64,000 nucleotides of DNA from Carpediemonas membranifera BICM (lineage: Eukaryota > Protista > Fornicata): contig JAHDYR010000024.1 in NCBI GenBank assembly GCA_019828565.1, positions 427,664-491,663 on the forward strand, given 5' to 3'. Below are positions 11,401-58,452 of this stretch, in pieces. Under the pieces are notes generated by a model, which made no database searches, had not been told where the DNA came from, and worked only from the letters and a program-made list of their open reading frames with translations. The first letter of the stretch is position 1. Each line of letters begins with the position of its first letter. Both the position numbers and the translations under genes were made by a program.

Positions 11401-13052
11401 TCTCATAGAACACCTCCGCGGTCCGGGACGTCCTAGCCTCGCTGCTGTGGAAGATCCGCATCTCCTTGAGGAAGTCCTCGCGCCGGTCAGCGGGCAACAC
11501 ACCCTCCGCAAAGGCCAGCGCCGCTTCCCTAGTCTGGCTGACACCCGCGTGACTCAGCCGGCCGCCCCATTTCAGGACTACGACGGCCTCTGTGTTCTTC
11601 CCACTGGGGCACGTGGCCTGGCACTCCTTGCGGTGGAAGGTCAGGGTCGCGTTCGTCAGTCGCTCGTCGTCCAGCGCCCGCACCAGCTGCATCGCCGACT
11701 CCCGCAGTTCAGCAGGAGCGTCTGAGTCACGCAGTTTTAGGAGAGTCTCATGGAACTCGAGGACCTTCTGTGGGGTCCTATCCCTACTGATGGTGGTGTG
11801 GGCCTTGACCCGACCAAAGACGCTGTTGACGATGGAGATGGGGAGGACGACCTTGATCTTCCCCTTGGGCCTCCTGTCGGCGTACCGGGCGACGCAGACG
11901 ACGGCCTCGAGCTGGCCCAGGTCCGCCTCGGTGGTACCAGGGGGCATATCCTCGCTGGTCCTGTTCTCGTGACGTGCGACCAGCCTGCTCTTGGCCTGGA
12001 TGACGAGCTGCCTCAGTACTCGGGCGGTGTGGTCGTAGTAGTGGTGGTCGCCCTTGACAAACGACCAGCCGTTCACGTCACACACAATGAAGCTCTTGTC
12101 GGGCTTGCGGAGGATGTCGAAGCCGCAGACGCGCTGGCCAAACGCCTGCCCGATCATCTTGGCCGCCCTCCGCTCCTCATGGGAGAGCACGCACACCTCG
12201 CGGACCTCCTTGCCGCGGTCATCCCGCTCCACGATCCCGTCGAGGGCCGGCGTTTTCCTCAGCTCGCCGTGCACGTAGTCGGGCAGCACGGTGTACGCCT
12301 TGAGGTCCTTGGCGTCCTTGACCTCGAGGAACTCCTCGTACAGATATGCCCCGTCCCTGCGGACGTCACACGGGCCCGGGAAGAACTCGGAGGACTTGCA
12401 GTCGACCTTGCGGAAGAGCCGGCGGACACCCGGGCCGCACGGCGACTCGGGGCCGAAGTAGATCCAAACGTTGTGGTCCTCGCCGTCGACTGGCTTCTCC
12501 ACGAACGGGGTCTGCAATGTCTGGAATCCCCTGAAGGAAAGTGTGCTCCCGTCAAAGACGACGTCCGCCTCGTCGATATCCATCCTGTCCCGGGACACCG
12601 CGAAGTGCCTGGCTACGGGGATCTTGGCGCCCTTTAGCCTGGAGTACACCTCCCTTCGATCCTGCAGTGCCTGCTGCAGGCGGAGGTCGTTGATGCAAAA
12701 GGGGTGAACGGTGTCCACGTAGCTGATGGCCTTCTTCAGGGGAAAGCCATCTGAGTAGAAGCTGATGAGGACGTCGACGACGGGCCAGTTCTCGATGGCT
12801 GTGTGAGTACGGGGGGGGGGACGAACGTTGGTGGAGGATGAGATCGTTAGGGAAGTAGACAACCTTGATGTCGCCATGGGAGGTGATACGCTTCACAATT
12901 TCCCGCATTGGTTTGCTCCTCGCCTTCTTCTCGAGCACGCAGATGCCTAAGAGCACCTGAGAGCTTGAGTCCCTGTGCGCCGAGAGTCCTTTGGAAAGCA
13001 GGTTGAAGTCCGGGAGCTGCTCAAGCGTCGTCGGTCGTAGATTCAGTGGCAT
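8498..13052 (-). CDS. PPIP5K: Inositol hexakisphosphate/diphosphoinositol-pentakisphosphate kinase (VIP1/PPIP5K); 2 exons (13052-12827, 12798-8498); ATP-grasp kinase plus two His-phosphatase-like domains
   Basis: GICVLEKKARSKPM, spliced junction ILHQPIENWP, PFVEKPVDGEDHN, CDVNGWSFVK, RHGDRTPKQKVK, LYFTSESH. Confidence 0.95.
12799..12826 (-). other. Spliceosomal intron, 28 nt (PPIP5K)
   Basis: GTTCGT...ACTCACACAG; removal joins two frames into the conserved QPIENWP. Confidence 0.9.
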
Positions 13053-13153
13053 GCTTTCTGTTGCCTTCTGGGCTTGAGAAGTGCCTGGAGAAGTCGCAAA
13101 TGAATGAATCAAACTTTACAACAATATATGGGGCATCATCCTCCACCAGCCGC

Positions 13154-14545
13154 TCACTCGCACCACCAGTGCTTGAACCCCGGCAGCAGTGAGGCGATGG
13201 CCGGTGCCAGGCTCCACACGGCGTACGCCGCCTCGCTCTGGTCCCCGGCAACCCGCCCGAAGCACTCCATGGGCCGCTCATCACGGAAGAAGGCCCGCAT
13301 CTCGCTGTCGAAGAAGGGGTTGGCCTTGCAGTGCTGTCCAACGGTCCGCTTTGCTTCGTCAAGCTTGCCCTTGACGTACTGCGTAAGAATAATGGGCAAC
13401 CCCATCTGAAGATCAGGCTCCCCCGGCCGCTTAGTGAACTCCTCGTCGCTGATGTTGGCGAGCCTATTAGTGAGCACCTCCACCGCCAGCTGCCCCATGC
13501 CAACGTTCATGTGATCCAGAATATCGAGGGCGTTCACCTCCTGGAACAGCTCGCTGGCCTGCTGGGCACTGCCGTCAGGCTCCATGAGCGCCGTGTTCCC
13601 CAAGAACGACATCGCCCTCACCAGCGGCCGGGCGAAGGCATCGTCGTGTGTCCACATCAACCCCTTCCCCAGCCGCAGGGCCCTGTCGTAGCTGGGGCGG
13701 GCCCGAGCTAGGGCTCTCGAGAGATGGGCGATGCGGCGGCCGGTGGGGCACACCGCTTCTGCCATGTACATGTGGGCCTCGAGGCAGTCTGTGTCATGGG
13801 TGAACGCTGAGACCAGCCTGCCCCGGCACTTGTCGGGATCCGTCTTCGAGCACTGGAAGGCCTCGAGCACGAGCAGCTGGGCCTCGAGCATGCCGCGGCG
13901 GGCCTCCCTGCAGACCTTCAGCTCGTTGAGGACGAGGTTTTTCTCCTTATCGAGCAGCCTTAGGGCCACCGTGTCGAGCATGGGGATGGTGTAGGGCGGA
14001 GGAGGCAGGTCCTTCTTCTTGAACGGGTGGTTCCCAAGATAACGCACTGTCACAGGGCCCAGCTTGCGGGCGGACTCTATGCGTTGTATGACGTCTGGGT
14101 CTGCTTTGTACAGCCTCGCCTTGGTCGGGCCGTCCAGGTGGGGCAGAACGTCGCTGAAGATGCGGTCGACGAGGCTCTGGCAGTAGTCCCCGATGGAGAA
14201 GCTCACGTCCATGCTGTACAGCATGTGGAAGTCCTTCAGCGCCTGGTCGTGGCAGCCAGGAAGCATGGAGGCCGCCACCGCCCGACGAAAGCGGGTTTTC
14301 GAGTGCTGGCCGTCGATCGAAAGGGCCTTGTCCGCATGGAATATGCTGTCCTTGTATCTCTTGAGCTTTGTGTAGCACTGTGCGGTGTTGCTGTGGAGCA
14401 CCACGCGCAGCTCGGCGTCCTTCGTCTCCTTGGTCTCGTCGAGGGCCGCGAGGTACAGATCAACGGCATCGAGGAACTCTCCCTTGCGATAGTGCTCGTT
14501 GGCCTTTTCTTTCAACGTCTCCGCCGTACGGGGCTCGTTGCTCAT
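13154..14545 (-). CDS. TPR-repeat protein (N-terminal chaperone-binding-type TPR triplet plus helical C-terminal domain)
   Basis: AETLKEKANEHYRKGEFLDAVDLY, LHSNTAQCYTKL, KALSIDGQHSKTRFRRA. Confidence 0.8.
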   Translation of the reverse strand: MSNEPRTAETLKEKANEHYRKGEFLDAVDLYLAALDETKETKDAELRVVLHSNTAQCYTKLKRYKDSIFHADKALSIDGQHSKTRFRRAVAASMLPGCHDQALKDFHMLYSMDVSFSIGDYCQSLVDRIFSDVLPHLDGPTKARLYKADPDVIQRIESARKLGPVTVRYLGNHPFKKKDLPPPPYTIPMLDTVALRLLDKEKNLVLNELKVCREARRGMLEAQLLVLEAFQCSKTDPDKCRGRLVSAFTHDTDCLEAHMYMAEAVCPTGRRIAHLSRALARARPSYDRALRLGKGLMWTHDDAFARPLVRAMSFLGNTALMEPDGSAQQASELFQEVNALDILDHMNVGMGQLAVEVLTNRLANISDEEFTKRPGEPDLQMGLPIILTQYVKGKLDEAKRTVGQHCKANPFFDSEMRAFFRDERPMECFGRVAGDQSEAAYAVWSLAPAIASLLPGFKHWWCE

Positions 14546-14771
14546 GTCGAAAGGCTGGACTATCCGAATTACGTATACATAACAGGCCATATACCGATCC
14601 AGGCCAGGGCGAGTGCCACCCCAATCTCAAGGCTGGGTGCAGGCTCAGGCTTTCCTGGCAAACTGGAAGGAATCATGGGTCAGCCCAATGAGCCTGCCAA
14701 TTCTGTCCAGATATTGCTGTCGTAACATGATAAATGGATTAAACTTCATGATAAAATCTGCGATTTATGCC

Positions 14772-15437
14772 TTAAGCCTCAGCAGAGGGCGAGTAGACGT
14801 GCTGCCAGAGGAGGCCGCCAATCTCCCGGCTGGTGAGCTCCACCTCGGTGGCGGGGCGCATCTTGGTAGTGTCGGTGATGGGCGTCGGCTTGATGTCGAA
14901 CATGGTGCCGAAGATGTTCTCGTCGAGGAAGTCGTACCAGGGGCAGGAGACGTCCGTGCTGGGCGGGTAGGGCAGACGGCCCTTGCGGGGCAGCGCGTTG
15001 AGCTTGGTGCAGTGGATTGAACCGAGCTTGCGGAGCTTGCCGTTGGCGTCGCGGGGGCGAGGGAGCTCGTAGTCGAGGTTGAGAGTGCGGAGGGCGTTGC
15101 CATGCTCGAAGTCGATCCAGGTGGGGCGGTGGCGCATCAGGTACCAGGAAACCGGCAGGATACGGCCCTTGCGCACAGGGTTGAGCAGGATCGGGGAGCA
15201 AATGACGCGGCCAGTCTCGGGGGTGTCGAACAGGTTCCCGAAGACGCACTCGTCAATCGTGTCGAGCCAGTCGCGCTCGATCGTGGCGTTGGGGTTGATC
15301 GGGGTCTTGCGGCCGCGGCGTGGCTCGCAGGTGAAGCACTCGGCGTTGTTGAGCTGGAAGTGAGCGTTCTCGTAGCAACGAGGGCACTGGAAGAAGTCTG
15401 GCGCGAAGCGCGTTGTGAGATCGGATTGATTCATCAT
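14772..15437 (-). CDS. Hypothetical protein with two CxxC motifs and an internal repeat
   Basis: 221-aa ORF, strongly C-ending codons, CPRC and CFTC, repeated WxDxxDExxFGxxFD. Confidence 0.75.
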   Translation of the reverse strand: MMNQSDLTTRFAPDFFQCPRCYENAHFQLNNAECFTCEPRRGRKTPINPNATIERDWLDTIDECVFGNLFDTPETGRVICSPILLNPVRKGRILPVSWYLMRHRPTWIDFEHGNALRTLNLDYELPRPRDANGKLRKLGSIHCTKLNALPRKGRLPYPPSTDVSCPWYDFLDENIFGTMFDIKPTPITDTTKMRPATEVELTSREIGGLLWQHVYSPSAEA

Positions 15438-15736
15438 AGTGTAACGTTCTGTGAACAGCTTCGCAGAAAAGGTTCGCAGGAGAGGTTCGCAAGCCGAACA
15501 TTGCTGGAAAACTCAAACTTCAGAGAATGCTGGTGCAAAACAACGAAAATTCAATGGTGTACGCGCTAATCACGAGGGAATACAAGTCGCTGATTAGACG
15601 ATTGTTGTTCTAAACAGAGATCCCGCCATGTCGTGTTTAATTGTCAGATTAGACCACCATGATGGTCCAGGTCATGATAACGAGCACATATGCCACATAT
15701 GGGCCTCACATCACATGAATACAGTGTATACCGACT

Positions 15737-17461: not shown

Positions 17462-17586
17462 TGCCTGCTCCGACTCGACAGACTTTGAATCATGGAACCC
17501 AGCCTGTATGTGTGTGTTCTGTATGCCTTGGATACATGGCCCAGCACTGTGGCGCTGCTCTATTTACACTATGCCCGGGCCCCGAC

Positions 17587-18523
17587 TCAGTCGCTATCTG
17601 ACCCCCCCTCGGACGGGTCCTGCCCGTCGCTAAACTGTTCAAGGTACTTCAGAAGCTTGGTCGCCCCGCCCTTGAGTGTAGACATCCAGCTCCTGAAGGC
17701 CGCGGCGACAACGAGGAGTGCGAGGGCCAGTGCGGCTAGTACCATGGGGAGTACGGTGCTCTCGACCTCAACCCCGCCCTGCAGGTACGCCCCGACACAC
17801 GTCATGGAGGCTACCACGACCACGCCCGATAAATGGGTGCTGAACGGCCTGTGAGTGGCGAGCATGGGAACTACGAGTCCCATAAAGGAAGCGATGAGAC
17901 ATAGACTGAAGAGGAAGCCGAAGACCATCTGTCTGGGCGTGTGGTACCCCCCCAGGTACGTCTCGGCGAGGACAAGCAGGGCCAGGCCGACTAGGGGGAG
18001 CATGAACACGGCGACCCAGGCGGCATGGAACAGCACACGGCGGGTGGTCTGCCATTTGTACGGCAGGTTGGCTGACCCTGGCACTGCCATGACGGCGAAC
18101 AGGGCGATCACGGTGGAGTAGAAGGCGACGTGGCCGGAGATGCTGTTGGGGTGGCTGGAACAGGCGTAGTCGCCGATGGCCTCCTTGCCAAATGTGACGA
18201 ACTGGTTGGTAAGGAGGGAGTATGCGTATACAAGGATGAACTGGGCATGGTATATGGGCAGGTGCTGCGTGAGGAAGAGGACAGGTACAAACAGAGAGAC
18301 GCCTCACGTAGACGGCGTTGCAGACGGGAATGCAGAAGCCCGTACAGATAATAACTACGATGCTGGCATAGTACAGAATGGGATTCATTGTCGATACGAT
18401 CCCAGGAAGTCCGTCCCGGCTGTGGCACTCTGTGAACCAGTCCCAGACGGTGTTGAACGCTGATGGAAGTTCCACAGATGCCCCTACGGCGCTTTCGTTG
18501 ACTATATCGTCAAATGCGTCCAT
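17587..18523 (-). CDS. PAP2-superfamily multi-pass membrane protein; 2 exons (18523-18293, 18264-17587); start uncertain
   Basis: After splicing: PNSISGH (C2-like) and YLGGYHTPRQ (C3-like) motifs, several TM helices. Confidence 0.7.
18265..18292 (-). other. Spliceosomal intron, 28 nt
   Basis: GTTTGT...CCTCACGCAG; removal fuses two ORFs in frame. Confidence 0.85.
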
Positions 18524-20416: not shown

Positions 20417-20631
20417 GACCGGGTTGTCGGGCGAACAGTAAACTTATGATGGTGCGGTGGGGATGGGGTGAGGGAACAAGCCTGGCAATATGGTGGCCAT
20501 TGGACGACCATGTCCAACAACGGCCCCACCCTCATCCATCGGTAATTGCGGCTCAACAATTGGATCATCTAGGAATTTAAGGCGCCCTAGAATTTAAGCT
20601 TCGCATAACCAAAACCTCAACCCTTAAACCC

Positions 20632-26593: not shown

Positions 26594-27338
<745 letters not shown>

Positions 27339-27714
27339 TGTTGAACGATGCTCGTGGTTTTGGTCCTCGAAAAGTCGGTCGAGTCGACCTGTTTCCATCC
27401 AAGTACCGCCCCAGCTGAATGCACCGATGCAATGTACAGCAGACGCGATGCTGTGTTACCTGCTCTGTTTTTGTACCCAGACTCGTGCTTCGCGGCATGG
27501 CCCTAATCAAATCCTGCCAGTCAAAAATCGAAAACGATGCCAGGCAGCCTTCTTTCTCTGTGAGCCAATCGCGCCTTGCGTTAAATCACTTGAATTCACC
27601 CGATTTGAATTGATTTCAATTATCTCGACACCTGTGTGTCGAAGTTTTGTCGACTTGCCTCGTCGACGATTCGAACGGTGTTTGTTTGAGCTTTGTAGCC
27701 TTTATTCAGTATCC

Positions 27715-27987
27715 ATGGCTAAGAGAACGAAGAAGGTCGGTGTTACTGGCAAGTACGGTACTCGCTATGGTTCTTCTCTCCGTAAGATGGCCAAGAAGAT
27801 CGAGATCGCCGCCCACTCCCGCTATGTGTGCCCCTACTGCGGCAAGCACAGCGTGAAGCGCACTGCTGTCGGTATCTGGTCCTGCCGTGGCTGCGGAAAG
27901 ACCATGGCCGGCGGTGCCTGGTCTCTCAACACCACCGCTGCCGTCACCGCTCGCGCCACCATCCGCCGCCTCCGCGAGTCCCTGTAA
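27715..27987 (+). CDS. RPL37A: 60S ribosomal protein eL43 (L37a)
   Basis: [25 protein letters not shown]4 zinc finger. Confidence 0.98.
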
Positions 27988-28132
27988 ACGGCTAGCATCG
28001 TAAACCTCCAATGCGTCAGTTTGTTGTTTTATGGGTGAACTTTCGTCCCTTTGTCGCCATGCTTCGTTTGCAACAAAACGGGAAGAAGGCAGCTGGTTGA
28101 TCCAATTTAAAGGTAGTGCACAGGTACAACGC

Positions 28133-28746
28133 TCAGAACACGAACTCTTCCTCCTCCTCAGCCGGGCCAAGGCCAGGCTCGTCAACTCTGCAAATGGCAA
28201 ATGGCGTAACCTTGCCAGCGGTGGCAGGCAGCTCAATGCCAATAATTCTGCATCGACATACTCCACCCTCACGGATGACCCTATTGGCATTGTCGCCAGT
28301 GCCGACCCAGGTCACTGGGGTGGATGTGGAGTCGAAAACGTAACCAGATAGACGCTAGGTAAAGGGGCGAGCGTTGGACAAACGGATTGATCGACGAACA
28401 CACGCATGGGGCCAGCGGTCGCATGGAAGCCAGTCTCATGCGCCGTGCCGACGATGACGTCGATGACCTCGTTGATCATCGGGACAAAAACGAGGGCGCT
28501 GTATCTCACCTTGAACGAGGCAGAGCCGCCATAGCGTACAGCAGACTCATTGGACTCGGATTCTGGCAGTAGGAAACCTTCTGAGATTTCCATATTCCCG
28601 ATAACGGCTACAATTGAGCCGATTCCGTGAAGGTATCGACCTTCGACCTCGCTCTTGAGGATATCCTTGATATATCTCTGCATACCAGAGTTATAGTACT
28701 TGGGCGGCACATGGACGCGCCTACTAAGAGTCATACGCATCAACAT
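28133..28746 (-). CDS. RPB7: RNA polymerase II subunit RPB7; 2 exons (28746-28384, 28354-28133)
   Basis: EVEGR..G.IVAV, FKVRYSALVFVP..NEVID, GF...AGPMRVFV; exon 2 CRIIG...FAI. Confidence 0.88.
28355..28383 (-). other. Spliceosomal intron, 29 nt (RPB7)
   Basis: GTTTGT...CTTTACCTAG; removal restores the frame. Confidence 0.88.
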
Positions 28747-29059
28747 GCCTGTTTTCGGGGAGCCGCGTTCGCGTCTGCAGAAAACTGCAAGTCTAGAATT
28801 CCGGCCCTGTAACGTTAGTCAGGGTATGCTAGGCATGTAACGGCTCAGTACACTCGTACCAGCATCATGCTAGCGAGCTTGTTTGGTCACCCCGGCATGA
28901 AGCTCTCCGGAAATAATATTGGAGGGTCCCCAAGCACGTCACACAATCAGCAGATGCGGCACGTAGCGTCCTGGCATCATGTCTGCCTGGCCGGCTCTGG
29001 CCGCGATCTCGCAACGAGTCGCGGAGCGACTTGTGAGAGACAAGCAAACAGGCCATATC

Positions 29060-31201
29060 ATGGCGACGAGCTACAGTGTTGCTCAAATCAAGGAGAAGGT
29101 TCACGAAATTGCCCATGGTGAGTTCGCTGAGAGAATTGCGGCCGAGGGCTTCAAGCCTTGCATGAGTGGCATGCTTTTCCAGGTGAACGGCGCTTTCCCG
29201 AAGATGTGGGGCTTCATCGACCTTCCTAAGGAGGAAAAGGCCAAGTACAAGAACCCTTACAACTTCCTCTACGCGATCTGCGAGGAGCTCGGCCTCACGC
29301 CCATCGTCGAGGCCGCTCCTGTTGAGCGCGAGGTCAAGGCCGAGCCCGCCGCCGCCGAGCCCGCTGACCCCTTCACCAACGTTCCTACGAGCAACAAGCG
29401 CCTGCCCATCATGCGCGAGGCGTCTCTTGAGTTCTCCGAGCCCGGTGTCGAGGGCGGCATCCCCGCCTTCGTCGACCCCGCGACCGACGCCAACGAGGAG
29501 GACAACAAGGCCCGCGCCGCCTACCTGTCCGACAAGACATGGTGCGGCCGGGTTCTGTCTGAGCACGATAAGGTGCTCAAGGACTACGGCAACCTGACGT
29601 GCCTGACCCGCTTCCCCCCGGAGCCCAACGGGTATCTCCACATCGGCCATGCCAAGAGCATGTTCCTGAACTTCAACTACGCCAAGCAGCACAACGGCAA
29701 GACCATCCTCCGCTTCGATGACACGAACCCAGAGAAGGAGAATGTAGAGTTCGTCGAGAGCATCAAGGCTGACGTCCACTGGATGGGCCATGAGATATTC
29801 AAGACGACCTTCACCTCGTCCTACTTCCCCCGCCTCTACGCCATCGCCGTCGAGTTCATCAAGGCCGGCCTGGCCTACGTCGACGACCAGACCGACGCGG
29901 ATATGAAGCTGTACCGCGGCACCAAGCCCGACGGCACCCAGTGCGAGCCCCGCGACCCGCCCTGCCGCTTCAACTCAATCGAGACCAACCTGCGCGAATT
30001 CCAGCGCATGAAGGACGGTTTCTACCGGGAGGGCGAACGCACCCTTCGCCTGAAGATCGACATGCGCCACGCCAACCCCACGATGCGCGATCCCGTAGCC
30101 TACCGCATCAAGTTCTGCGAGCACCACCGCACGGGCACGGAGTGGTGCATCTACCCCTCCTACGACTTCTCCCACTGTCTTATCGACTCATTTGAGGACA
30201 TCACACACTCCATGTGTACCCTGGAGTTCCAGATCAGGCAGATCGTGTACAACTACGTCACGGAGCGGGCCAAGGTGTACCTCCCGATGCAGTGGGAGTT
30301 CAACAGACTGAACCTCACACAGACAGTCATGAGCAAGCGGAAACTCCTCCAGCTGGTGACGGACAAGCACGTTAGAGGGTGGGACGACCCCCGCATGCCC
30401 ACCATCCGCGGCCTCAGACGCCGCGGCTTCACCCCCGCTGCCCTGAACGCCCTGTGCGCGGCGGCTGGCGTGACCAGGTCTGACTCGCAGACGATCAGGG
30501 CGTCGCTGCTGGAGAGGTGCGTGAGAGAGGACCTCGATGCCTCGGCTCCCAGGGCATTCGCGGTTGTCAGCCCAGTCAAGGTCGTGATCGAGAACTTCGC
30601 CGAGCTGCTCGCCACCCACCCCGACTCGGCCACAGTCGAGGGCGATGCCATAATCTGCACCCACCCTCTTAAGGTCACCGCGGACACGTACACGGAACGG
30701 CTGACGTCCGAGCTCTTCATCGAGGAATCCGACTTCATGGCCACCCCCACCAAGGGCTTCCTCCGCCTCTTCCCGGGCGGCAGCGTCGGCCTCCGCTTCG
30801 GCCCTACCATCCAGCTTGCCAAGGAGGGCGCCGTGTTCACCGAGGGCGGCATGACCGTGCTGCGCGTCACTGGTGTCTGGGGCGCGACTCCCTCGAAGTT
30901 CATCCATTGGGTGTCCGCCGCGGACGCTGTCCCTGCCGAGGTCCGGCTCTACGGACCCCTGTTCGAGGACGAGAAGCCTGACCTCTCGGACGGCTGGGAG
31001 AAGCGACTCAACCCGGACAGCCTCGTCGTCAAGCGCGGGTACGTCAGCAGGTTTGTCGCCGAGACCGCACGCATCGAGGGTCACTACCAGTTCGAGCGTC
31101 TTGGTTTCTTTGTCGTCGACAAGGACACCGTGATGACCAAGGGCAAGGTGACTAGCCTCGTCGTCAACCGTACCGTAGGACTCCGCGACAGTTTCAAGTA
31201 A
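29060..31201 (+). CDS. QARS1: Glutaminyl-tRNA synthetase
   Basis: TRFPPEPNGYLHIGHAK, RFDDTNP, YDFSHC..DSFEDITHSMCTLEF, MSKRKL, QFERLGFF. Confidence 0.95.
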   Translation: MATSYSVAQIKEKVHEIAHGEFAERIAAEGFKPCMSGMLFQVNGAFPKMWGFIDLPKEEKAKYKNPYNFLYAICEELGLTPIVEAAPVEREVKAEPAAAEPADPFTNVPTSNKRLPIMREASLEFSEPGVEGGIPAFVDPATDANEEDNKARAAYLSDKTWCGRVLSEHDKVLKDYGNLTCLTRFPPEPNGYLHIGHAKSMFLNFNYAKQHNGKTILRFDDTNPEKENVEFVESIKADVHWMGHEIFKTTFTSSYFPRLYAIAVEFIKAGLAYVDDQTDADMKLYRGTKPDGTQCEPRDPPCRFNSIETNLREFQRMKDGFYREGERTLRLKIDMRHANPTMRDPVAYRIKFCEHHRTGTEWCIYPSYDFSHCLIDSFEDITHSMCTLEFQIRQIVYNYVTERAKVYLPMQWEFNRLNLTQTVMSKRKLLQLVTDKHVRGWDDPRMPTIRGLRRRGFTPAALNALCAAAGVTRSDSQTIRASLLERCVREDLDASAPRAFAVVSPVKVVIENFAELLATHPDSATVEGDAIICTHPLKVTADTYTERLTSELFIEESDFMATPTKGFLRLFPGGSVGLRFGPTIQLAKEGAVFTEGGMTVLRVTGVWGATPSKFIHWVSAADAVPAEVRLYGPLFEDEKPDLSDGWEKRLNPDSLVVKRGYVSRFVAETARIEGHYQFERLGFFVVDKDTVMTKGKVTSLVVNRTVGLRDSFK

Positions 31202-31245
31202 ACCAGGGCATAAACTGCGGGATGATTTACTGTGCATGTTTATAT

Positions 31246-32062
31246 TTATTGGGGCAGCAGGGCGAGGGCCTCCTCGAGATGCGCCCGGATCCCAACAACG
31301 TCCTTCCACTCAATCGCCGAGTTCACGATCTTGATATGCCGATGCAGCTCCTTGATAGTATCGGCGTCCAGTGTCACGGGCTTAGGGGACTTCACAGGAC
31401 TCACGGCGGGCCGGGCCGGCGAGGGCGTGGCCACTGGGGCTGGCTTAGGCGCCGGCTCGGTCGGGATGGGGTGCTGCGCCCTGGCCTCGTTGGCTAGCTC
31501 GGCCTCCAGCTGCGCCAGTTCGTCTGACACGTCGACGGGCTGCCCCGCCTCCATCGCGGCGATGTCAGCCCTAGTCCGGTCATCGGCCACCTGCTTGGCG
31601 ATGGCAGTTGCCCTGAACTTGGCGTAGCGTGTCTTATCTGAGTAATCGGTGTCAACAGAGTCCTTGAAGGACGTCAGCGCCTCAAGGAACGCCGCTGCCG
31701 CACGGAACTTGGCCGCGGTGGCCTTGCTGACGTCGCCGGTCTTGTCTGCTGTGTTATATGAGCTGGGGGAACGAACCCTTGTCTGCGTTGATGAAGACGG
31801 ACACCGCGAACGACTCGAGCTTCTTGGCCTGGTCAGCTCTGGCTATGGCGTGCTCATCCATCGCCTCCATGAGGTCCATCATCTTCGAAAGAAACGCCGT
31901 GGACGCCGGGTCCGTCGCTTGGCCTTGCTTTCTCATCACCATGGCCCTGTCAAGGGCGTGCACGAGAAGGGCGTAGGACACGACGGGATTGATGCTCTTT
32001 AGTTCATAGTGGCGCTCTAGTATATACCGCAGCGATTGGAGGGCCTGTGGGATTTGCTCCAT
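31246..32062 (-). CDS. VTA1: ESCRT/Vps4 cofactor Vta1; 2 exons (32062-31777, 31748-31246)
   Basis: PVVSY, FAVSVFINADK, F.AAA.FLEAL, KTRYAKFRA.AI, C-terminal VSL-like helix pair. Confidence 0.88.
31749..31776 (-). other. Spliceosomal intron, 28 nt (VTA1)
   Basis: GTTCGT...TATAACACAG; removes an in-frame stop and restores the frame. Confidence 0.9.
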
Positions 32063-32119
32063 TCGTTGTTTTCGTGGTTTTGCTTCGTTATTTCCAGAGA
32101 TCGTGACCCAGAGCCAGGG

Positions 32120-32611
32120 TCACCGCTGCGATACTGCGGCCAGCTTGCCCTTCTTCCGCTTCACGATGACGCGTTTGATCGGGTTCGATAGCATGCTCTT
32201 GCCCTTCTTGACCTTGATCTTCTTGGCCCGACCCACTGCCTGGTCCGACGGGGCGGATACCTCTGTACTACCGCTGTCGGCCCCATTGGACGGGGAGGCG
32301 GGCCTATGCGGGGCAGGGGGCATGAACCGCATCTGCTCGACGCTCCTCAGGGCGTCGGTGTAGATGCCGCGGAGGTCCTCGAAGGACGTGAACTGAATGG
32401 ACGTCGGTGTGGATGGAACACAGGAATCATCGCTGCCGTCGCTGTCGTCATCGTTGGAAGTGCGCATGGAGAACGACAGTGGATCGTTGAGCTCGTAGAA
32501 GATGAGGCTCTCGTTCCACATCATGTACTGTTGATCAGGGACGCTGTGCGCCATTCGTTCCAACTCAAACGCCCGTAAAGCACGGTACTCTTGTCCAACG
32601 CCTTGATCCAT
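32120..32611 (-). CDS. Hypothetical protein (acidic/Ser-rich middle, Lys-rich NLS-like C-terminus)
   Basis: 163-aa ATG ORF filling the gap between VTA1 and kinesin. Confidence 0.6.
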   Translation of the reverse strand: MDQGVGQEYRALRAFELERMAHSVPDQQYMMWNESLIFYELNDPLSFSMRTSNDDDSDGSDDSCVPSTPTSIQFTSFEDLRGIYTDALRSVEQMRFMPPAPHRPASPSNGADSGSTEVSAPSDQAVGRAKKIKVKKGKSMLSNPIKRVIVKRKKGKLAAVSQR

Positions 32612-32790
32612 GCCGGGGTTTGCTCCGCCCTTTCGCTTGACTCGAGATGCCCCAAGACTGCGAAGCTGAGGGCCGCATGGGCGTCAGCCTGGTGTAATGG
32701 GGGAGATTGCAGTCGACATCCCACAGACCCCTAGATCGTGACCAATCATTTCCAATTTTGATCGATCGGAAAGGTCACCGGCACGCACAG

Positions 32791-35700
32791 ATGCCTGCGA
32801 CCGATACTCAGAAGAACCGGAACAACATTAGAGTAATATGTCGATTTAGGCCACAAAACGGTAAGGAGAAGAAGGCAGGTGGAGCAGATTGCGTGAACTA
32901 CGGCGAGGACGACCATTCCGTCGCCATTTCAGGGAAAGGGTTCGGAGCCACGATGAAGATGTTCACATTTGACCGAGTTTTCAACGCTAGCAGCACGCAG
33001 GCGGATGTCTTCGAGACCGCTGCCGCCCCTGTTGTTGACGAAGTCTTCAAGGGCTACAACGGCACCATATTCGCCTACGGCCAGACCTCAGCCGGTAAGT
33101 ACCACGCCACCCCCTCACGCAGGTAAGACGCACACTATGCAAGGTCCGGACCTCGACGACTTCCACAACCGGGGTCTCATTCCCCGCATCATCGACAGCG
33201 TCTTCACACACTTAGAGGAGGCCGACGCCTCCCTCGAGTTCAGCATCAAGGTCAGCTACGTCGAGATCTATATGGAGAAGATCCGAGACCTGCTGGACGT
33301 CAGCAAGGCTAACTTGCCCATCCACGAGGACCGCACTCGCGGCATCTTTATCGGCGGCGTCACCGAGATCCACGTCGGGTCGCCCGAGGAGATCGTCAAC
33401 GTCATGAAGCTCGGGGCTAGAAACCGCATCGTCGCCTCTACCAACATGAACGCCGACTCGTCCCGCTCCCACGCCCTGTTTATCGTCACACTCACCCAGG
33501 TACACAGCGAGAGCGGGAGTAGGAAGGACAGCCGGTTGTACCTCGTCGACCTGGCGGGCAGTGAGAAGGTGGGCAAGACAGGGGCCGCGGGACAGACGCT
33601 GGAGGAGGCTAAGATGATCAACAAGAGTCTGGCGGCCCTCGGCAACGTCATCAACGCGCTGACCGACCGCAAGACGAACCACGTCCCCTACCGCGACTCC
33701 AAGCTGACCCGTGTGCTGCAGGAGAGTCTCGGGGGCAACAGTCTGACCACGCTCATCGTGTGCTGCTCGTCGTCCTCGTTCAACGCGCCAGAGACGGTTT
33801 CGACCCTCAGGTTTGGCGAGCGGGCCAAGATGATCGAGAACAAGGCCAAGGTCAACCAGGAGCGGAGTGTCGCCGAGTACAAGGCCCTGCTCAAGGCCGC
33901 CCACGACGAGATCGCCCGGCTCAAGGGCAAGACGGGTTCCTCGGACTCTCTGCCGACGGAGAACGACGAGGACCTGCAGGCTGAGCTCGAGGAGGTGCGG
34001 CAGGCTCTGGAGAACGCGAGAGAGGACCTCACTGTCGCCAAGGAGGAACTCGAGGCCGCCAAGGACAGGTCGGCCCTGGACTCGGCCCTGGACGCCCTGA
34101 ACGCCGTCACTGGCGAGAGGGACAAGCTCATCGACGAGCTGGAGGACGCGCTGACCCAGATCGAAGCGTTCACCATGGACCGTGACGACCAGCTGGCCGA
34201 GATGGAGGCGCTGCGGGATGAGATCGCGGCACTGCGGGAGACAGCACCACCCCCGACTACGGTTGTCTGCGGCACCCAGACGGAGCTGAGGCCCGCAGAC
34301 GACTCAGACTCGGAGTACGACTCGAGTGACTCTGACTCGAGTGACTCTGACTCGAGTGACTCAGCGGCCACGGACACGACTCGGTCGGACACTGCGACGA
34401 CAGACGCCCCCAACACTGACACGACGGCCTCGATGTCGCCCCTGCGGAAGACGATCGCCGTCATCCCCGGTACCGATGCCGCGGTCCAGACGGAGCCATG
34501 GTCAGACCCCAGAGTCGCCGCGGCAGAGGCTGAGGCCACGCGGCTGCAGTCGGACCTCGACACGGCCCAGGCCGAGCTCGCAGGAGTGACAGCGGAGTTG
34601 GCCGAGGCGAAGGCGTCGCACGAGGCTGACCTGGCCCGTATTGAGGGCGAAGAAGCCCAGCGCGTGAAGGCCGAAGCGGCGACCCGTAACGAGCTTGAGG
34701 ACGCCCGGTCGCAGGTGACCGAGCTCCAGGCGACTGTGGCACGACTCGAGGCCCAGCAGGCGGCCGGTGAGCTTATGGAGACGGACGAGGAGTCCGAGGC
34801 GGAGTCAGACAGTGACGACAGCGAAGCCCTGCAGGCCACGATTGCCCAGCTGGAGAAGGCCAATGGTGCCCTCCGGTCTGAGCTGGCAGACGCCCAGTCC
34901 TCCCTGACGCAGGCCCGGACGACGCTGGAGTCCGTGCGGGCTGACCGGACGAGGCTGGAGGCGGAGAAGCACGGACTGCGGTGGCATCTGGAGAAGATCA
35001 AGGCCAGCTACGCCACGCGGCTGTCTGCCGTCGACGCTCGGGAGAAGAGGGCCACCGCCCGCCTGGCAGAGGTGCAGGCCGAGCTCGTCCAGACCCGCCA
35101 GGCCTCTGCAGCAGCGGCACAGGTGGCGGAGGACGCCACTGCAGCACTGAAGGCGGAGGAGCGGCGTCTCAAGGGGGAGCTGGCGACGATGGGGGAGGAC
35201 CTTAGGGACCGGTGCGATAGGGTTGTCCGGCTCGAGATCCAGCTGTGCGAGGCTAGGGAACAGCAGGAGAGCTTCCTCAAGGGCGGTGGCGGCAGCAAGG
35301 CGCTCATGCGTCGTGTGACGTTCTTGGAGCGGAACCTCGAGAACATCAGCGCCGTCAACACCGCGCTGACCACCCAGAACAGCAGCCTGCGGTATGCCGC
35401 ACAGGTGGCAGAGAGGAAGCTCGCGGCAAGGGAGACCCGTGTCGAGCGGCTCGAGACGCTGGGCCGGGAATCAGAGGCGCGGTACCGGGGCCTCATGAAG
35501 GCCAAGGACGACGAGTGCGCCAGACTCCGGGGCGTCGTCGACTCCATGCGGAAGGAGCTCGAGGTGCACCGGGCCGAGACCGCGGCGGGCCTCAGCGGTG
35601 GCAGAGAGCGGGCGACGTCCATCGGGGGGCACAACATCATGCGGCCCATCCGGGGCGGGTCCCGGTTCACGGCGAGACACTTCCCCCAGGAGATCTCCCC

Positions 35701-52922: not shown

Positions 52923-52957
52923 TTTATATGATGGCAGGATAGCATGTAAAGACTAGG

Positions 52958-54940
52958 TCACCCATGTATCGTGTAGCCGCCGTCCGTGAGTGACAGCGCC
53001 ACGACACCCCGCACCTCTGCCTCGACGCGGCCCCGGAACTCACTGACAACACAGTGCTGGATGCGGGTCGCAGCGAGGACACGGGCCTGGCCGGAGGAGG
53101 TAAGGACACCGTTGGCGATGAGCCCCTCGAACATCGAGGCGACGAGGCCCGGCTCAGCGGTGGGGAAGCCGAACTCCAACGCCACCGGTGTGGTCACCTC
53201 GCCATCTACAGCCACGCGGAGCACGGCGGGCTGGCTGTCGACGTTGAACTCACCGGCGACGTCTATAAACGGGTGCAAGAACTCGGGCACGCTGTCGATG
53301 GCGCCTTCGGGAAGGGGTAACCCAATCGACACGGTCCGGCCTGGCAGCCGCTCCTGCAGCAGGAGGGGCGTGGCCCTGGGCTGGGACAGCAGGGCTAGGC
53401 TCGTCGCTGCGGGCAGGGGGAAGTGGGGCCGGGCTGGGTCGACGAGGTCACCCCGCACAGGTGGCGGCCGCACGACCGTGGCGCCAGGAGGGTAGAGAAA
53501 TATGGCCGGGCCGACCCCAACGGTCGTCATGGCGAGCAGACGGACCCAGGGCTGCAGGGACGGGTCCAGCCCTCGGCCTAGGGCGGGTGTCGGCGTGTCC
53601 AGGTGGGTGGCGCGGGGGCACACGATCAAGCGTGTCGACGCAGGCACGGCCAGCTGACCCGGGCCCTCGGCTAGACGCTCCGTCGCCATGAGGTAAATCC
53701 TGTGGCCTGCGGGGAGGGCCTTAGCGAGGGCGTCCAGGATCACCCCAATTGCTCGCACCGCCGCGACCTTCGTCTCCCGGGAGGACTCGAGGTCGAGCAC
53801 GTGCGGCAGACCGGCAGACTCAGCCATGGGAGTGGGGGCCACCGCCCCGAACTCCGCCGTGATGAGGCGGGCCATGTCCCTTGCCTCCCCATCCCCGGCA
53901 TAGCCCGTCTGCCCGATCTTATGGGCGATGTGGACCAGCTCGGCCGGCCCATCGAGCTCGGCCACCGCCCGGAGGACTGCGGGGTCGAGGGCCACGCCGA
54001 CGCTCGACTCCGCCGTCTCAGCGGCGTCCCCGTCCAGCCAAGAGGAGTGGTAGACGGCGACAGACCTGGGGTCGGCCGGCCCTGGTAGTAGGGCGTGGAC
54101 CAGCCCCACTCGGATGAGGGTCGCGGTCTGCTGGTCCGGCCCGGGCCTGTCGAGGGCGGCCAGGAGCTCGCACTCGTACGGTACAAGGTCAGATACGTCT
54201 GTGAGCACCGCGGCAATGTCGGTCGAGGCGAGACTGACACCGTGATCCGGGATGGACTGGAAGAAGACGCTGCCCTGCGACATGAGGTCCAGCAGGTCGT
54301 CCACGGGGAGCTCCCCCGCTGTCCGAGTGCCCTGTGCAGCCTGTATGAGTCCATACGTCTTGGCCAGCCGTCCACTCGGGCTGGGGCTGTCCGGGTTGGC
54401 GTGCACCGTCCACCAGTGGTCAATCGCGGTCCGGGAGAGAGGGGGGAGCCGCACCTTGGGGGCCGCCGCCCTAGAGAACAGCGACCGTCGGGTGGTGGGC
54501 CTGCGGTCGAGCTGCTCCTGGTACCACGCCCCGTCGACGGCGAACAGCTTGACGATGTCTGCCCTGGTAAAGGGAGAGACGTCCTGCCACGCCGTCCCCG
54601 CCGCCAGTTGCTGCTCTATCAGCGTCTCGTAGAACATTGGGACGGGCATGTCCGCGGCGAGGCAGTCGGGGAGGAGGGCGTATGGAAACACCTGCCCGGC
54701 CTTCGCCAGTGCCGCCATCATGCGCTTATAGTACTGCTTCTCCTTCATCTCGGGCTTCATATCGCGCCTCCACCGTCTGCGCTGGAGGAAAAGGACCTGC
54801 TGCTGCTGGCTCTTGGAGACACGGCCCGCAGGCGGGTCCAGCGGGCCTGCAAACGGCGACTTGCCCGGTATTCCCGCTATTGAGATGTTGTAGTGGCTCT
54901 CCAGGTCCGTGGAGAAGTCCATACACAGATCATCGCCCAT
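52958..54940 (-). CDS. FAM91A1: FAM91A1-like protein
   Basis: EKQYY...VFPYAL, FTRADIVKLF, AIDHWW.V, C-terminal LEFGFP match FAM91 blocks. Confidence 0.72.
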   Translation of the reverse strand: MGDDLCMDFSTDLESHYNISIAGIPGKSPFAGPLDPPAGRVSKSQQQQVLFLQRRRWRRDMKPEMKEKQYYKRMMAALAKAGQVFPYALLPDCLAADMPVPMFYETLIEQQLAAGTAWQDVSPFTRADIVKLFAVDGAWYQEQLDRRPTTRRSLFSRAAAPKVRLPPLSRTAIDHWWTVHANPDSPSPSGRLAKTYGLIQAAQGTRTAGELPVDDLLDLMSQGSVFFQSIPDHGVSLASTDIAAVLTDVSDLVPYECELLAALDRPGPDQQTATLIRVGLVHALLPGPADPRSVAVYHSSWLDGDAAETAESSVGVALDPAVLRAVAELDGPAELVHIAHKIGQTGYAGDGEARDMARLITAEFGAVAPTPMAESAGLPHVLDLESSRETKVAAVRAIGVILDALAKALPAGHRIYLMATERLAEGPGQLAVPASTRLIVCPRATHLDTPTPALGRGLDPSLQPWVRLLAMTTVGVGPAIFLYPPGATVVRPPPVRGDLVDPARPHFPLPAATSLALLSQPRATPLLLQERLPGRTVSIGLPLPEGAIDSVPEFLHPFIDVAGEFNVDSQPAVLRVAVDGEVTTPVALEFGFPTAEPGLVASMFEGLIANGVLTSSGQARVLAATRIQHCVVSEFRGRVEAEVRGVVALSLTDGGYTIHG

Positions 54941-55235
54941 TTCGATGTCGAGCGAGCCGTTCTACCATGATGCATTCATTTCAACACGGCCGAAAGCTGC
55001 CGTGGAATCATTGCTAGCTTGGTCTAGATCGGCACAGCTGACCTCCTTTCCTGATGTGGCTGGCCGCAGGGTGTCTCTGCGTTTCAATGCCTCACTCACA
55101 GACGGTAATGAAATGGCACGGCGCCTGTAATGAGACTGCCACGCGCTGGTGTTACACTGATTCGTTCAAGACATTGTGACCTCCAGTTATGAGGGGTCCA
55201 CTTCGCACTTTAACCCTTGCCACTCGTCGTGCGGT

Positions 55236-56856
55236 ATGAATTTCTCCCGAAGGAAGAAGTCTGTGTCGTCCCTGCCAGTCCCCACAGCACCCAGAATATC
55301 CTATAACGTCATCAAGATCAACAGACATGGCAAACGCCAGAACCGGTTTGTGAAGGGAGTTCCGCTCACGCAGTATTCTCAATCTTTCCACTGACGGAGT
55401 CAGAAACATGAATGGGTCATCGATACAGTGGCACATGGACTCAAAGGATGTCCACTCGGTAACCGTGGCTCCTGACGGCAAGTCGTTCACCATGAGCGTG
55501 CTTCAGCACTACTCATTCGAGCCCGAGTCCATGGAACACATGTGCCAGATCATCTCCTCCTTCGAGAACCTCAACATCGTCGACTCCGTCAAGCGCCCAC
55601 CCGCGCTGGCTGAGCAGATTGCGCTGTCGAGGCGCGGCCCCGTGCACCCGATGATGACCTTCGACAACCTGCCCGCCTTCCCCAGCACAGAGAAGACGGA
55701 GCAGATGCTCTCCGACGACGACGACGACGAGTTCCCGTCCGACGATGGGCAGGACACGATCCCGATTGCCGCCCAGGAACGGAGGGATGTGGTTCAGCAC
55801 GACGAGGGCGTCGGGCCCGACAACTTCACGCTACTGTACCTGATCGGGAAGGGGTCCTTTGCAAAGGTCTTCCTGGTCCGCAAGAACGACACCGGTGACC
55901 TTTACGCCATGAAGGTCATGCGCAAGGCCGAGCTCGTGCGCCGCGACCAGGTCCACCACACGATGACCGAGCACCTTGTGCTGAAGCAGCTGACGCACCC
56001 CTTCATGGTCCAGCTGCACTACTCCTTCCAGACCCCTACCAAGCTCTACCTCGTGCTCGACTTCGCGTACGGCGGCGAGCTCTTCTACCACCTCAAGAAG
56101 ACCGGCCGCTTCCCTGAGATGCTGGCGGTGTTCTACACGGCCGAGATCCTGCTGGCCCTCAACTTCCTTCACTCCCGTCACATCATCTACCGCGACCTCA
56201 AGCCCGAGAACGTCCTGCTCGACAAGGAGGGCCACGTCAAGCTGGCGGACTTCGGCCTGTCCAAGGCCGGCGTCACCGCGGTCGGGGGTGGGTCCGGCGG
56301 CATCTCGGCCAAGACGTTCTGTGGCACTCCCGAGTACATCGCCCCAGAGGTCCTGACTGGCGTCGGACACGGCAAGGGCGTCGACTGGTGGTCCACCGGC
56401 GTGCTGCTGTTTGAGATGCTCACCGGGTCGCCGCCTTTCTACTCCAAGAACCGCCAGCAGATGTACAGAAACGTCATCCGCGGCAAGATCGCCTTCCCCT
56501 CCGTGATCGGGCCCGAGGCGCAGGACTTCCTCTCGCGTATCCTTGTCCGCAGGCCCGAGGACCGTCTGGGGGCCAACGGGTTTGACGAGATCAAAACCCA
56601 CCCCCTCTTCAAGAGCATCGACTGGGCCCGACTCGAGGCCCGCCAGGCACCCCCTCCCTTCCGGCCTCGCCTTCGTGAGGACGACCTGACTGCGAACTTC
56701 GACCCCGAGTTCACCAGTGAAACCCCACGGGACTCGTACGTGCCACCAGAGCAGGGAGGGGTCGAGCGGGACGTCCAGGAGACATTCGACGCATTCACCT
56801 TCAACAAGGACGTCGATGCCCGGTTGCCGCAGAGCAGGTGGGCTGCGGAGCAGTGA
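55236..56856 (+). CDS. AGC-family Ser/Thr kinase (PKB/SGK/S6K-like) with an N-terminal PH-like domain; 2 exons (55236-55345, 55374-56856)
   Basis: GKGSFAKV, YAMKV, YRDLKPEN, DFG, TFCGTPEY, NFDPEFT, hydrophobic motif FDAFTF. Confidence 0.93.
55346..55373 (+). other. Spliceosomal intron, 28 nt (AGC kinase)
   Basis: GTTTGT...GCTCACGCAG; gives YNVIKINRHGKRQNRILNL in frame with the kinase. Confidence 0.88.
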
Positions 56857-56890
56857 TAAAGTACCATGCTGTGTCGATAAGTTTATAAGA

Positions 56891-57385
56891 CTAGCGCATC
56901 CTGTTACTGTATGCCAGGATGGGGCTGTAGATGGCGGACGCGTCCCGGGATCCTGGGCCGGGGCTGCGGGTGCTGGCGGGCCGGACGGAGTGCGAAAGAA
57001 TGGGGGACGCCGACAGTACGGATACGGCGGGCTCGGGCTCAGGCATGCGGCCGTATGACGGCGGTGGTGTGTTCCTGGGCTCATACATGGACTGCTGGAG
57101 CGATACAGGGCCTCCCTGGATCTCGGCATTGATACCCGTGAGCAGCGATTGGCTCCGGTCCATGCTGGACTGGATCTCCGCCAGTTGCGCCTGGATGCGC
57201 CCCATTTGGTCCATCTTCTGCTTCTTGAGCATCTTGAGGTGGCGGGCGCCGTCAGAGAAGCAGTCCCGACCATACTTGAGCGTGAAGTTCTCCGCCGTCG
57301 TCAGGTCGGCATCAATTTCCTGAATTTCTGCTTCTAGCACAACATAGTGCGATCGAAGTTGTTGATCAAGCCCTGTAGGGGTCAT
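56891..57385 (-). CDS. Hypothetical protein, coiled coil plus Pro/Ser-rich tail
   Basis: 164-aa ATG ORF filling the gap. Confidence 0.65.
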   Translation of the reverse strand: MTPTGLDQQLRSHYVVLEAEIQEIDADLTTAENFTLKYGRDCFSDGARHLKMLKKQKMDQMGRIQAQLAEIQSSMDRSQSLLTGINAEIQGGPVSLQQSMYEPRNTPPPSYGRMPEPEPAVSVLSASPILSHSVRPASTRSPGPGSRDASAIYSPILAYSNRMR

Positions 57386-57472
57386 TTGGCGTCAATGTAT
57401 AGTGAATAAACGTGCGAAATTCTGCAAGGCAACCTTCACCAACCAACCGCCCCCCCACAAGACTAGGGATAT

Positions 57473-58452
57473 TTAATGCTTCGTCCACACGGCGTCCGTC
57501 TTGTGGACACGGTCGGCGGGCACGTCGTACTGGGAGACAGCCTTGATCAGGGCGATGCCGATGGAGGACTCAAGCTTGTGCTTCTCGTCGTGGGTCAGGA
57601 AGTCGTTCGAGCGGCGCTGGGCGAGGACGATGTTGGCGCCGGCGGGCTTGATGGTGCCGTGTGAGCTGCGGGCGAGGTCGAACAGGTGGAACGTCTCCAT
57701 CTCAATGGCGACGGTGTTGGGGTACTTGGCAACGAGGTCGTCGACGACAGTCTCGTTGCGGTCGTCGAAGTAGGTGTTGGTACGGCCCTGGGAGGAGTAG
57801 AACGAGCAGCCAGAGGCGTTCACACCCTCGTGCACGTTGGCCTCACCGACGGCGGCGGCACACTCCTTGTTGACGAGGTCCTGGAGGACGCGGTCGGCGG
57901 GAGCAAGGCGGGTGATCTTGAAGGGCATCTTGCGGTCGGTGTCGTCAGCATCCTCGGCGAAGGCATCAGGGTTGCGGTAGATGCCGCAGCAGCCACCTCC
58001 AGAGACGGCGATGTGGCCGACGGGGATGTCAGGCTGGGGGGTGCCGCAGGTGCCGAAGCGGACGATGGCGAGATCACCCTCGACAATGGCGCGCAGCTCA
58101 CGGACGACGAAGTCCATGTTGGGGAAACCCATCATGGAGGCGACGATGGAGACGGGGACCTTGTTGTAGAAGCCGGTGTAGATGACGAAGCCGCGAGGAG
58201 ACTTGTTCTCGAAGACAATCTCGTCAAGGAGGGTGGAGAGGAACTTGGCACGGCCAACATCGCCGCAGGTGACGATGCGGTTGGCGACTGCGTGAGAGAA
58301 ACTATGTGTAACGAACCGTGGCCTTCCTTGACGCCGAGGTGGTACACCAGCCCGTTGCCGTCACGGGGGAAGTTAGCATCAGTGCAGTTAGAGATCTCAG
58401 TAGTTTCGGGGACCTGTGTAGGGCGTATTTGGGTGGAACGAACACCAGACAT
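57473..58452 (-). CDS. Uridine/nucleoside phosphorylase (NP-I family); 2-3 exons
   Basis: DANFP.DGNGLVYHLG, spliced VANRIVTCGDVGRA, MGFPNMDF, RFGTCG, SFYSSQGR, EMETF. Confidence 0.92.
58288..58316 (-). other. Spliceosomal intron, 29 nt
   Basis: GTTCGT...TCTCACGCAG; removal restores the frame (EGHVANRI). Confidence 0.92.
58414..58443 (-). other. Probable in-frame spliceosomal intron, 30 nt
   Basis: GTTCGT...CCCTACACAG right after ATG TCT GGT; fits the consensus but is not needed to keep the frame. Confidence 0.7.

Follow-up and report, generated by a model that had tools for sequence, protein, structure and literature searches.

Carpediemonas membranifera is a free-living relative of Giardia that branches near the base of the lineage leading to it. 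We analysed a stretch of 64,000 nucleotides (nt) at one end of a contig of its genome (C24:427664-491663; hereafter the window), in which an initial annotation made from the sequence had marked nine segments of 28-30 nt as introns. All nine segments were confirmed at the positions proposed, and six of them have independent support as real spliceosomal introns. Genome-wide, such introns follow a tight rule: their length has a floor and mode of 28 nt with a tail to 34 nt, and a U at -8 and an A at -6, counted back from the last base of the intron, are nearly invariant. It is probable (roughly 0.8) that they are ordinary GT-AG, U2-type introns built on a near-minimal plan in which branch site and acceptor would form a single fused element. 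This design is a variant of a known metamonad plan and not a new kind of splicing.

Nine short introns and intron candidates in the window

The window is gene-dense, with 61% G+C, and belongs to an assembly of 24.24 Mb in 69 contigs (published as 24.2 Mb, 69 contigs and 57.1% G+C; PMC8516963). On checking the sequence we found the coordinates, lengths, donors and ends of the nine segments to be as the initial annotation had given them. Six are 28 nt long, two 29 nt and one 30 nt; seven lie on the minus strand and two (33095 and 55346) on the plus strand. All nine have GT...AG termini and end in AC-N-YAG, and their donors read GTTCGT (five), GTTTGT (three) or GTAAGT (one). The nine, with one further candidate, are listed here and are called by their first coordinate below.

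12799-12826, minus strand: 28-nt intron, phase 1, in the gene for a kinase of the PPIP5K/Vip1 type; GTTCGT donor, CTCAC-A-CAG end
18265-18292, minus strand: 28-nt intron, phase 0, in a gene for a membrane protein that matches PAP2 weakly; GTTTGT donor, CTCAC-G-CAG end
27216-27243, minus strand: 28-nt intron, phase 2, in the DPM1 (dolichol-phosphate mannosyltransferase) gene
27680-27709, plus strand: additional 30-nt candidate intron of a 5' untranslated region (UTR), found by motif scan and absent from the initial annotation; GTTTGT donor, TTTAT-T-CAG end
28355-28383, minus strand: 29-nt intron, phase 0, in an Rpb7/Rpc25-like gene; GTTTGT donor, TTTAC-C-TAG end
31749-31776, minus strand: 28-nt intron, phase 1, in the Vta1 gene; GTTCGT donor, ATAAC-A-CAG end
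33095-33122, plus strand: 28-nt intron, phase 1, within a kinesin motor domain; GTAAGT donor, CTCAC-G-CAG end
55346-55373, plus strand: 28-nt intron candidate, phase 2, before the open reading frame (ORF) of an AGC-type protein kinase; GTTTGT donor, CTCAC-G-CAG end, G-rich interior
58288-58316, minus strand: 29-nt intron, phase 1, in a gene for a uridine/purine nucleoside phosphorylase; GTTCGT donor, CTCAC-G-CAG end
58414-58443, minus strand: 30-nt intron candidate, phase 0, in the same nucleoside phosphorylase gene, nine bases past its start codon; GTTCGT donor, CCTAC-A-CAG end

The pattern GTWYGT-N16-ACNYAG occurred five times in the window compared to 0.12 times expected from shuffles, and of the nine CTCACNYAG sites, six were preceded by a GTNNGT donor at a distance of exactly 28 nt from the AG. 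The interiors of the nine introns and the 27680 candidate contain 46% C and 15% G, as opposed to 30% C and 31% G in the window. Excision of each of the eight 28- or 29-nt segments connected the longest upstream open frame with the longest downstream one. The initial annotation had held that eight excisions are required to restore reading frames; the joining was seen in all eight, but at 55346 the need for it is not proven, because an ATG at 55408, downstream of the segment, could start the kinase ORF alone.

RNA contigs from four runs of one sample were examined across 27150-33140 (5,991 letters), and three introns were missing from them. The contigs skipped exactly 28 letters at 31749 and, in three runs, exactly 29 letters at 28355, one of the latter contigs having a poly(T) tail end. 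At 27216 the contig stopped at 27215 and resumed with the ten letters following 27243 (27244 onwards). One could suppose that the segments are differences at the DNA level, such as assembly insertions or excised DNA elements, especially as the RNA nature of the runs was a guess. The contigs, however, behave as complementary DNA: they carry a loose end of 24 T at the 3' end of a minus-strand gene, they cover genes and leave the spacers uncovered, and their depth ranges about 2000-fold between genes, from 40 to about 77,000-78,000. GT-AG ends, a branch-like motif and spliceosomal small nuclear RNAs (snRNAs) are all present, and the published annotation, which was built with RNA-seq hints (PMC8516963), splices segments of this kind. 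We therefore regard a DNA-level origin as scarcely credible, and the spliceosomal reading of the segments agrees with both the RNA contigs and the protein evidence below.

By far the deepest contig cover, about 78,000 compared to 40-470 in its neighbours, fell on the gene for ribosomal protein eL43/L37a (27716-27987, plus strand), and the 27680-27709 candidate ends six bases before the ATG of this gene (27716). At 28776, 5' of the Rpb7-like messenger RNA (minus strand), three runs carried the same 23-24 extra letters (CTGGACCTTGGCTGTCACTCAAA, transcript sense), which are a library adapter or a leader; they had no match in the 32 genome loci examined. A 255-letter loose end at 27724 had no match in the window and was set aside as probably belonging to a chimeric contig.

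Protein profiles, against which the exons were searched singly and not as joined (spliced) models, run on across the junctions. The PPIP5K2_N profile was matched from 1-42 in the exon upstream of 12799 and from 42-90 in the downstream exon, the Vta1 profile from 3-90 and 92-143 across 31749, and the kinesin profile from 1-85 and 86-327 on the two sides of 33095, which had no RNA contig cover. The SHS2_Rpb7-N domain is located in the exon upstream of 28355. At 58288 the PNP_UDP_1 domain begins directly with the exon, and an in-frame start codon is lacking there.

Three of the nine introns are spliced in public protein models. Model P0001 (1508 amino acids, aa) comprises 75 aa, a codon split by 12799 and 1432 aa; P0145 (238 aa) contains the 31 residues of exon 1, the split codon and exon 2 across 27216; and P0121 is spliced at 58288. 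The annotation pipeline thus did find such introns, and the expectation that gene finders would call them frameshifts does not hold for the public annotation, which splices at least three of the nine. A second PPIP5K gene in the same genome (P0002, 77% identical) lies on another contig.

The nucleoside phosphorylase gene has an orthologue, 75% identical, on a contig of the related genome GCA_002919055.1. It contains a 34-nt intron at the same position and codon phase as 58288-58316, with a GTATGT donor, an unrelated interior and a CTGAC-T-CAG end in which the A still stands at -6. The same locus has a further 28-nt candidate ending in CTCAC-A-CAG, seen by motif and frame joining. No DPM1 orthologue could be singled out among the thousands of conserved matches in that genome. 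Altogether, RNA contigs, Pfam continuity, public protein models or the orthologous intron give independent support to six of the nine window introns, and the claim that the segments are spliced was borne out where RNA contigs skip them, in agreement with Pfam and the public models.

Length, spacing and donor rules across the genome

Genome-wide counts were obtained by motif-anchored pattern searches, with the reversed pattern as a control. The pattern GTTYGT-N(3-33)-CTCACNYAG gave 263 matches compared to 46 for the control. Among the first 100 of the 263, lengths of 28, 29, 30, 31, 32, 33 and 34 nt were found 39, 12, 7, 12, 6, 3 and 6 times, respectively, and lengths of 26 and 27 nt were not found at all. 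The other 15 were five copies of a 19-nt tandem repeat and ten matches near the control rate. Introns of 49-79 nt with the same motifs were not in excess (29 matches, 25 in the control). The description of the introns as nearly fixed at 28-30 nt therefore stands insofar as lengths are tightly bounded genome-wide, but the distribution is actually a floor at 28 nt with a tail to 34 nt.

Several of the 49-79 nt matches were two short introns around a 3-nt exon; such pairs are found at C4:171750-171976 (32 nt, CGA and 29 nt; 30 nt, CCA and 29 nt). A tandem array at C8:1028063-1030272, with a period of about 548 bases, contains in each unit a 19-nt GTTCGT...CTCACCCAG match; these matches were rejected as introns, being too short for the class.

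Fixing the length at 28 nt and allowing any GTNNGT donor yielded 183 matches compared to 9 in the control. These included 77 unique 28-nt sequences, whose donors were GTTTGT (26), GTTCGT (22), GTATGT (7), GTACGT (5) and others (17); grouped by class, 48 were GTTYGT and 13 GTA(C/T/A)GT. Donor position +3 was U in 66% and +4 a pyrimidine in 92%. Near the acceptor of the 28-nt set, position -4 was A in 51%, G in 22%, C in 19% and T in 8%, and -3 was C in 88%.

The spacing of the 3' motif proved as constrained as the length. When the gap between CTCAC and YAG was left free (0-6), it was exactly one base in about 86 of 100 matches, the rest being nested matches or noise. When positions -9 to -4 were left free, the intron-like matches read CTCAC (17), xTTAC (8), xTTAT (4), CTAAC (2), CCTAC (1) and TTCAC (1), so that U at -8 and A at -6 hardly vary; CTAAC accounted for only 2 of 32. 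The proposal that a yUnAy-like element is fixed directly before the acceptor with its A at -6 is thus upheld, other spacings lying at noise level. The pyrimidine-rich spacer precedes the branch motif and does not follow it.

Dividing the 174 net 28-nt matches by 0.46 (the fraction of lengths that are 28 nt) and by 0.53 (the fraction of motifs that are CTCAC) gives a rough estimate of about 700 introns in the genome. The 200 kb of contig C24 that were examined are poor in introns and rich in repeats. An unbiased scan for any GT...AG connecting open frames of at least 80 codons showed no peak and was discarded as too noisy, because long open frames are found in all phases of this G+C-rich genome.

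Could the 28-nt peak instead reflect recent copying of one short intron-like element, in an introner-type burst or as transposon cargo, and not a limit of the spliceosome? Identical matches do recur: one 28-nt intron sequence is repeated at least 15 times on contig C5 (e.g. 8766-8793), evidently within repeated (transposable) elements, and one 29-nt sequence occurs four times in C24 loci (L011, L019, L025 and L026), evidently within repeated elements with intron-containing genes. After copies were collapsed, however, 77 unique 28-nt sequences with unrelated interiors were left. The length cut is one-sided, with none at 26-27 nt and a tail to 34 nt, and the orthologous intron of the related genome keeps its ends while differing in length and interior. 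We consider copying a very improbable source of the peak, and we take up below the reading in which the floor is set by the spliceosome.

Spliceosomal RNAs and proteins

Six U2 snRNA genes were recognised by the Rfam model at 57-68 bits, above its cut-off. All six read UCAAGUGAAGUUUC where the Rfam consensus has UCAAGUGUAGUAUC, so that the branch-recognition hexamer is GAAGUU in place of GUAGUA in 6/6 copies. Two U1 genes (36 bits, below the cut-off) have the canonical 5' start AUACUUACC, and U6 (35 bits, below the cut-off) has a canonical ACAGAGA box and the AGC triad. Altered pairing of U1, U6 and U2 had been suspected, but a change is seen in U2 only: its branch-recognition sequence differs, whereas the U1 5' end and the U6 ACAGAGA box are canonical. 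We made no use of the computational Giardia U2 candidate of 2008 (PMC2518118), which has reportedly been revised since.

Two identical, inverted U2 genes at C63:800404-803587 (locus L002) flank a transfer RNA (tRNA) gene with a 19-nt insertion in its anticodon arm (a tRNA intron). The U1 and U2 genes (loci L002-L009) share an A-rich box of the AACAACATCA / TAACAATATCAGTA type about 10-20 bases 3' of the gene, which probably serves as a signal for 3'-end processing.

A 414-residue protein matches U2AF_lg across all three RNA-binding domains at 135 bits, compared to 50 bits for the next family, and its best relatives of solved structure are all U2AF65. Prp18 is also encoded in the genome. SF1-HH and Slu7 had no match in a six-frame search, by which absence cannot be demonstrated. 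With a U2AF65-like protein and Prp18 encoded, the suggestion of a reduced spliceosome is unsupported or overstated. The U12-type donor (A/G)TATCCTT and branch TCCTTAAC were absent from the nine introns and from the genome-wide matches listed; minor snRNAs were not searched for.

A proposed reading of the 3' element

Splicing, the motif at its constant spacing, the distribution of lengths and the sequences of the snRNAs were observed; which nucleotide is the branch, in which register U2 pairs and what sets the length floor are inferred as follows. An intron would begin with GU(U>A)YGU as its six-base donor, continue with a spacer rich in C and poor in G, and close with a 3' element of nine bases, (C/U)U(C/U)A(C/U)-N-YAG, with which U2 snRNA would pair around a bulged A at -6. 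In 5'-G31 U32 G33 A34 A35 G36-3' of U2 (human numbering), G36 would face the C/U at -9 and A35 the U at -8; past the bulge, G33 would face the C/U at -5, U32 the base at -4 (A/G in 73%) and G31 the C/U at -3, each as a pair or wobble. Branch site and acceptor would therefore be read as one unit, and the 3' splice site would be the first AG after the U2 helix, five bases from the branch A. If the spliceosome is unable to bring the donor nearer than 22 nt to the branch A (donor G to A), a hard floor of 28 nt would result, and deletion bias together with selection would hold most introns at this limit or slightly longer (28-34 nt). We take the floor to be a putative steric minimum, which agrees with the proposal of Hudson et al. 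for diplomonads and Trichomonas (PMC6679479).

Several features agree with this scheme. In some 28-nt candidates (C9:306169 and C4:351214), A-6 is the only adenosine apart from that of the AG, and this speaks for A-6 as the probable branch point. At -7, U, which pairs with A34, is found in 38% and the canonical A in only 6%; the rarity of A does at least fit the U-to-A change in U2.

Other points weigh against it. The commonest base at -7 is C (56%), which mismatches A34 of U2, and RNAduplex energies between intron tails and U2 are weak, the bulged register not being favoured over plain UCAC/GUGA pairing. A-6 was picked as the putative branch by motif logic. Donors match U1 at just four positions (+1, +2, +5 and +6); the U at +3 and the Y at +4 are unpaired with canonical U1, and although U at +3 might form a wobble pair with G in the U6 ACAGA, C at +4 does not pair with U6 either, which leaves donor recognition unexplained. 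The length histogram counts motif-anchored matches and not RNA-seq junctions, and introns with other motifs or of much greater length escape it. In the window, three of the nine introns are without independent support, the argument being frame joining and motif for two and the motif for one. The two are 18265, where excision connects 108 and 225 open codons and the downstream exon has no early Met, though its weak PAP2 match begins at residue 38, and 55346, where 61 and 493 codons are connected and the candidate may lie in coding sequence or in a 5' UTR. The third is 58414-58443, which public model P0121 translates as ten residues (VRSTQIRPTQ). This segment is in frame and stop-free, so the motif is the only argument for its splicing, and an equivalent exon is missing from the related genome.

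The introns may be real while A-6 belongs to an extended acceptor read by a protein (U2AF-like or Prp8), with the branch in the upstream spacer or at a non-adenosine. The mismatch at -7, the weak duplex energies and the encoded U2AF65-like protein would suit this alternative, as would the very tight distance of merely five bases from branch to AG. Against it, the spacer has no conserved position and some candidates offer no other A, and U-8 and A-6 match the general yUnAy branch consensus. The same spacing, as CTAAC-AC-AG, is found in Yarrowia lipolytica, and fused branch sites occur in Giardia and Trichomonas (PMC2483917, PMC12316389). We judge a protein-read acceptor with its branch elsewhere to be unlikely. 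The U2-based reading in its full form is that the altered U2 (GAAGUU) reads branch and acceptor as a nine-base element with the helix extending to -3, that the CU(C/U)AC consensus breaks the WCTRAY rule of every other strongly constrained lineage, that donors, whose pyrimidines at +3 and +4 suit a canonical U1 poorly, are read mainly by U6 or proteins, and that the 22-nt floor is a physical minimum. We put this full form forward tentatively, as rather less likely than not.

Comparison with known systems

Giardia, Spironucleus and Trichomonas are known to have introns of uniformly small size, with the branch point fused to the 3' splice site at an invariant spacing (PMC1201135, PMC6679479, PMC12316389), and a constrained spatial distance between intron elements has already been proposed (PMC1201135, PMC6679479). 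Carpediemonas introns show the features of this metamonad type, namely a motif directly before the AG without a pyrimidine tract and a short, uniform size. The initial annotation had compared them with Giardia and Trichomonas introns of slightly longer spacing, and this comparison is correct, the A lying at -8 there (PMC1201135, PMC2483917, PMC12316389). The 12-base metamonad motif ACTAACACACAG (CTRAC branch, A at -8) was not matched, as the A in Carpediemonas is at -6 and is preceded by C or U, nor was the extended metamonad donor GTAYGT / GTAAGTY the prevailing one among the 77 unique 28-nt sequences, of which 48 carry GTTYGT and 13 GTA(C/T/A)GT.

The closest match is the type B introns of Trichomonas (23-28 nt, with A/T at donor +3 and C/T at +4). 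Those of T. vaginalis and T. stableri are likewise very short and uniform (23-25 nt, to 28 nt in T. stableri; PMC12316389; Wang 2018, PMC6260720), and they share with Carpediemonas the composition at +3 and +4, the fused branch/3' motif, a pyrimidine-rich remainder and U2-type GT-AG ends, the Carpediemonas donor resembling their GTWYWD. Trichomonas differs in its branch motif, (T)CTAA at -12 to -8 with the A at -8 (one base nearer in the six shortest), and in having only 24-52 type B introns plus a long class of 50-196 nt. Carpediemonas, in contrast, has its A at -6 in CUCAC/CUUAC, a floor at 28 nt, several hundred introns and no excess of long motif-bearing ones.

Giardia lamblia and Spironucleus, which are also Fornicata, share the invariant distance from branch to acceptor and short, uniform introns (PMC1201135, PMC6679479). 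Giardia, however, has ACTAAC/ACTGAC-ACAC-AG with the A at -8, and Spironucleus one base more; both have GTATGT/GTAAGTY donors, 3-8 cis introns and highly divergent snRNAs, whereas the snRNAs of Carpediemonas are recognisable by Rfam models. Yarrowia lipolytica has its branch motif two bases (AC) before the AG, with the A at -6 (Irimia and Roy 2008, PMC2483917), but its motif is the canonical ACTAAC and its introns are long (median about 200 nt); as Yarrowia is a fungus, the likeness is one of convergence. Narrow lengths near a lineage-specific minimum are shared with the tiny-intron genomes cited in PMC12316389 and PMC2483917 (Stentor, 15 nt; the Bigelowiella nucleomorph, 18 nt and up; Paramecium). 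As described there, such genomes are intron-dense and their internal signals tend to be weak (PMC2483917), whereas Carpediemonas is intron-poor with a strong 3' signal.

We found no genome-wide description of Carpediemonas introns in the literature. The C. membranifera genome paper and its supplements contain no intron statistics (PMC8516963), and a comparison table of 2025 still enters "ND" for the number of introns in this genome (PMC11787283). For C. membranifera itself, two introns of the carbamate kinase gene (Simpson et al. 2002) were discussed in 2005 (PMC1201135) as small, with potential branch sequences that abut the 3' boundary in a pyrimidine-rich stretch; as given there, the account covers two introns and includes no length law, -6 spacing, donor consensus or snRNAs. 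What is new here are the numbers (floor, spacing and donor), the CU(C/U)AC branch consensus, which departs from WCTRAY, and the matching change in U2.

Carpediemonas displays the fused, fixed-size design on several hundred introns, not a handful, together with recognisable snRNAs, and its design rules (a floor at 28 nt, A-6, GUUYGU and U2 GAAGUU) can therefore be measured statistically. The design also points to an early common origin, within Metamonada, of the Giardia plan and the type B plan of Trichomonas. For Carpediemonas and its relatives, gene callers and aligners should allow a minimum intron of 28 nt or less and accept in-frame introns of 30 or 33 nt, which may be systematically translated through in annotation, as the candidate at 58414-58443 is. 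If the altered U2 does read a nine-base element, this organism would be a natural system for minimal splicing geometry.

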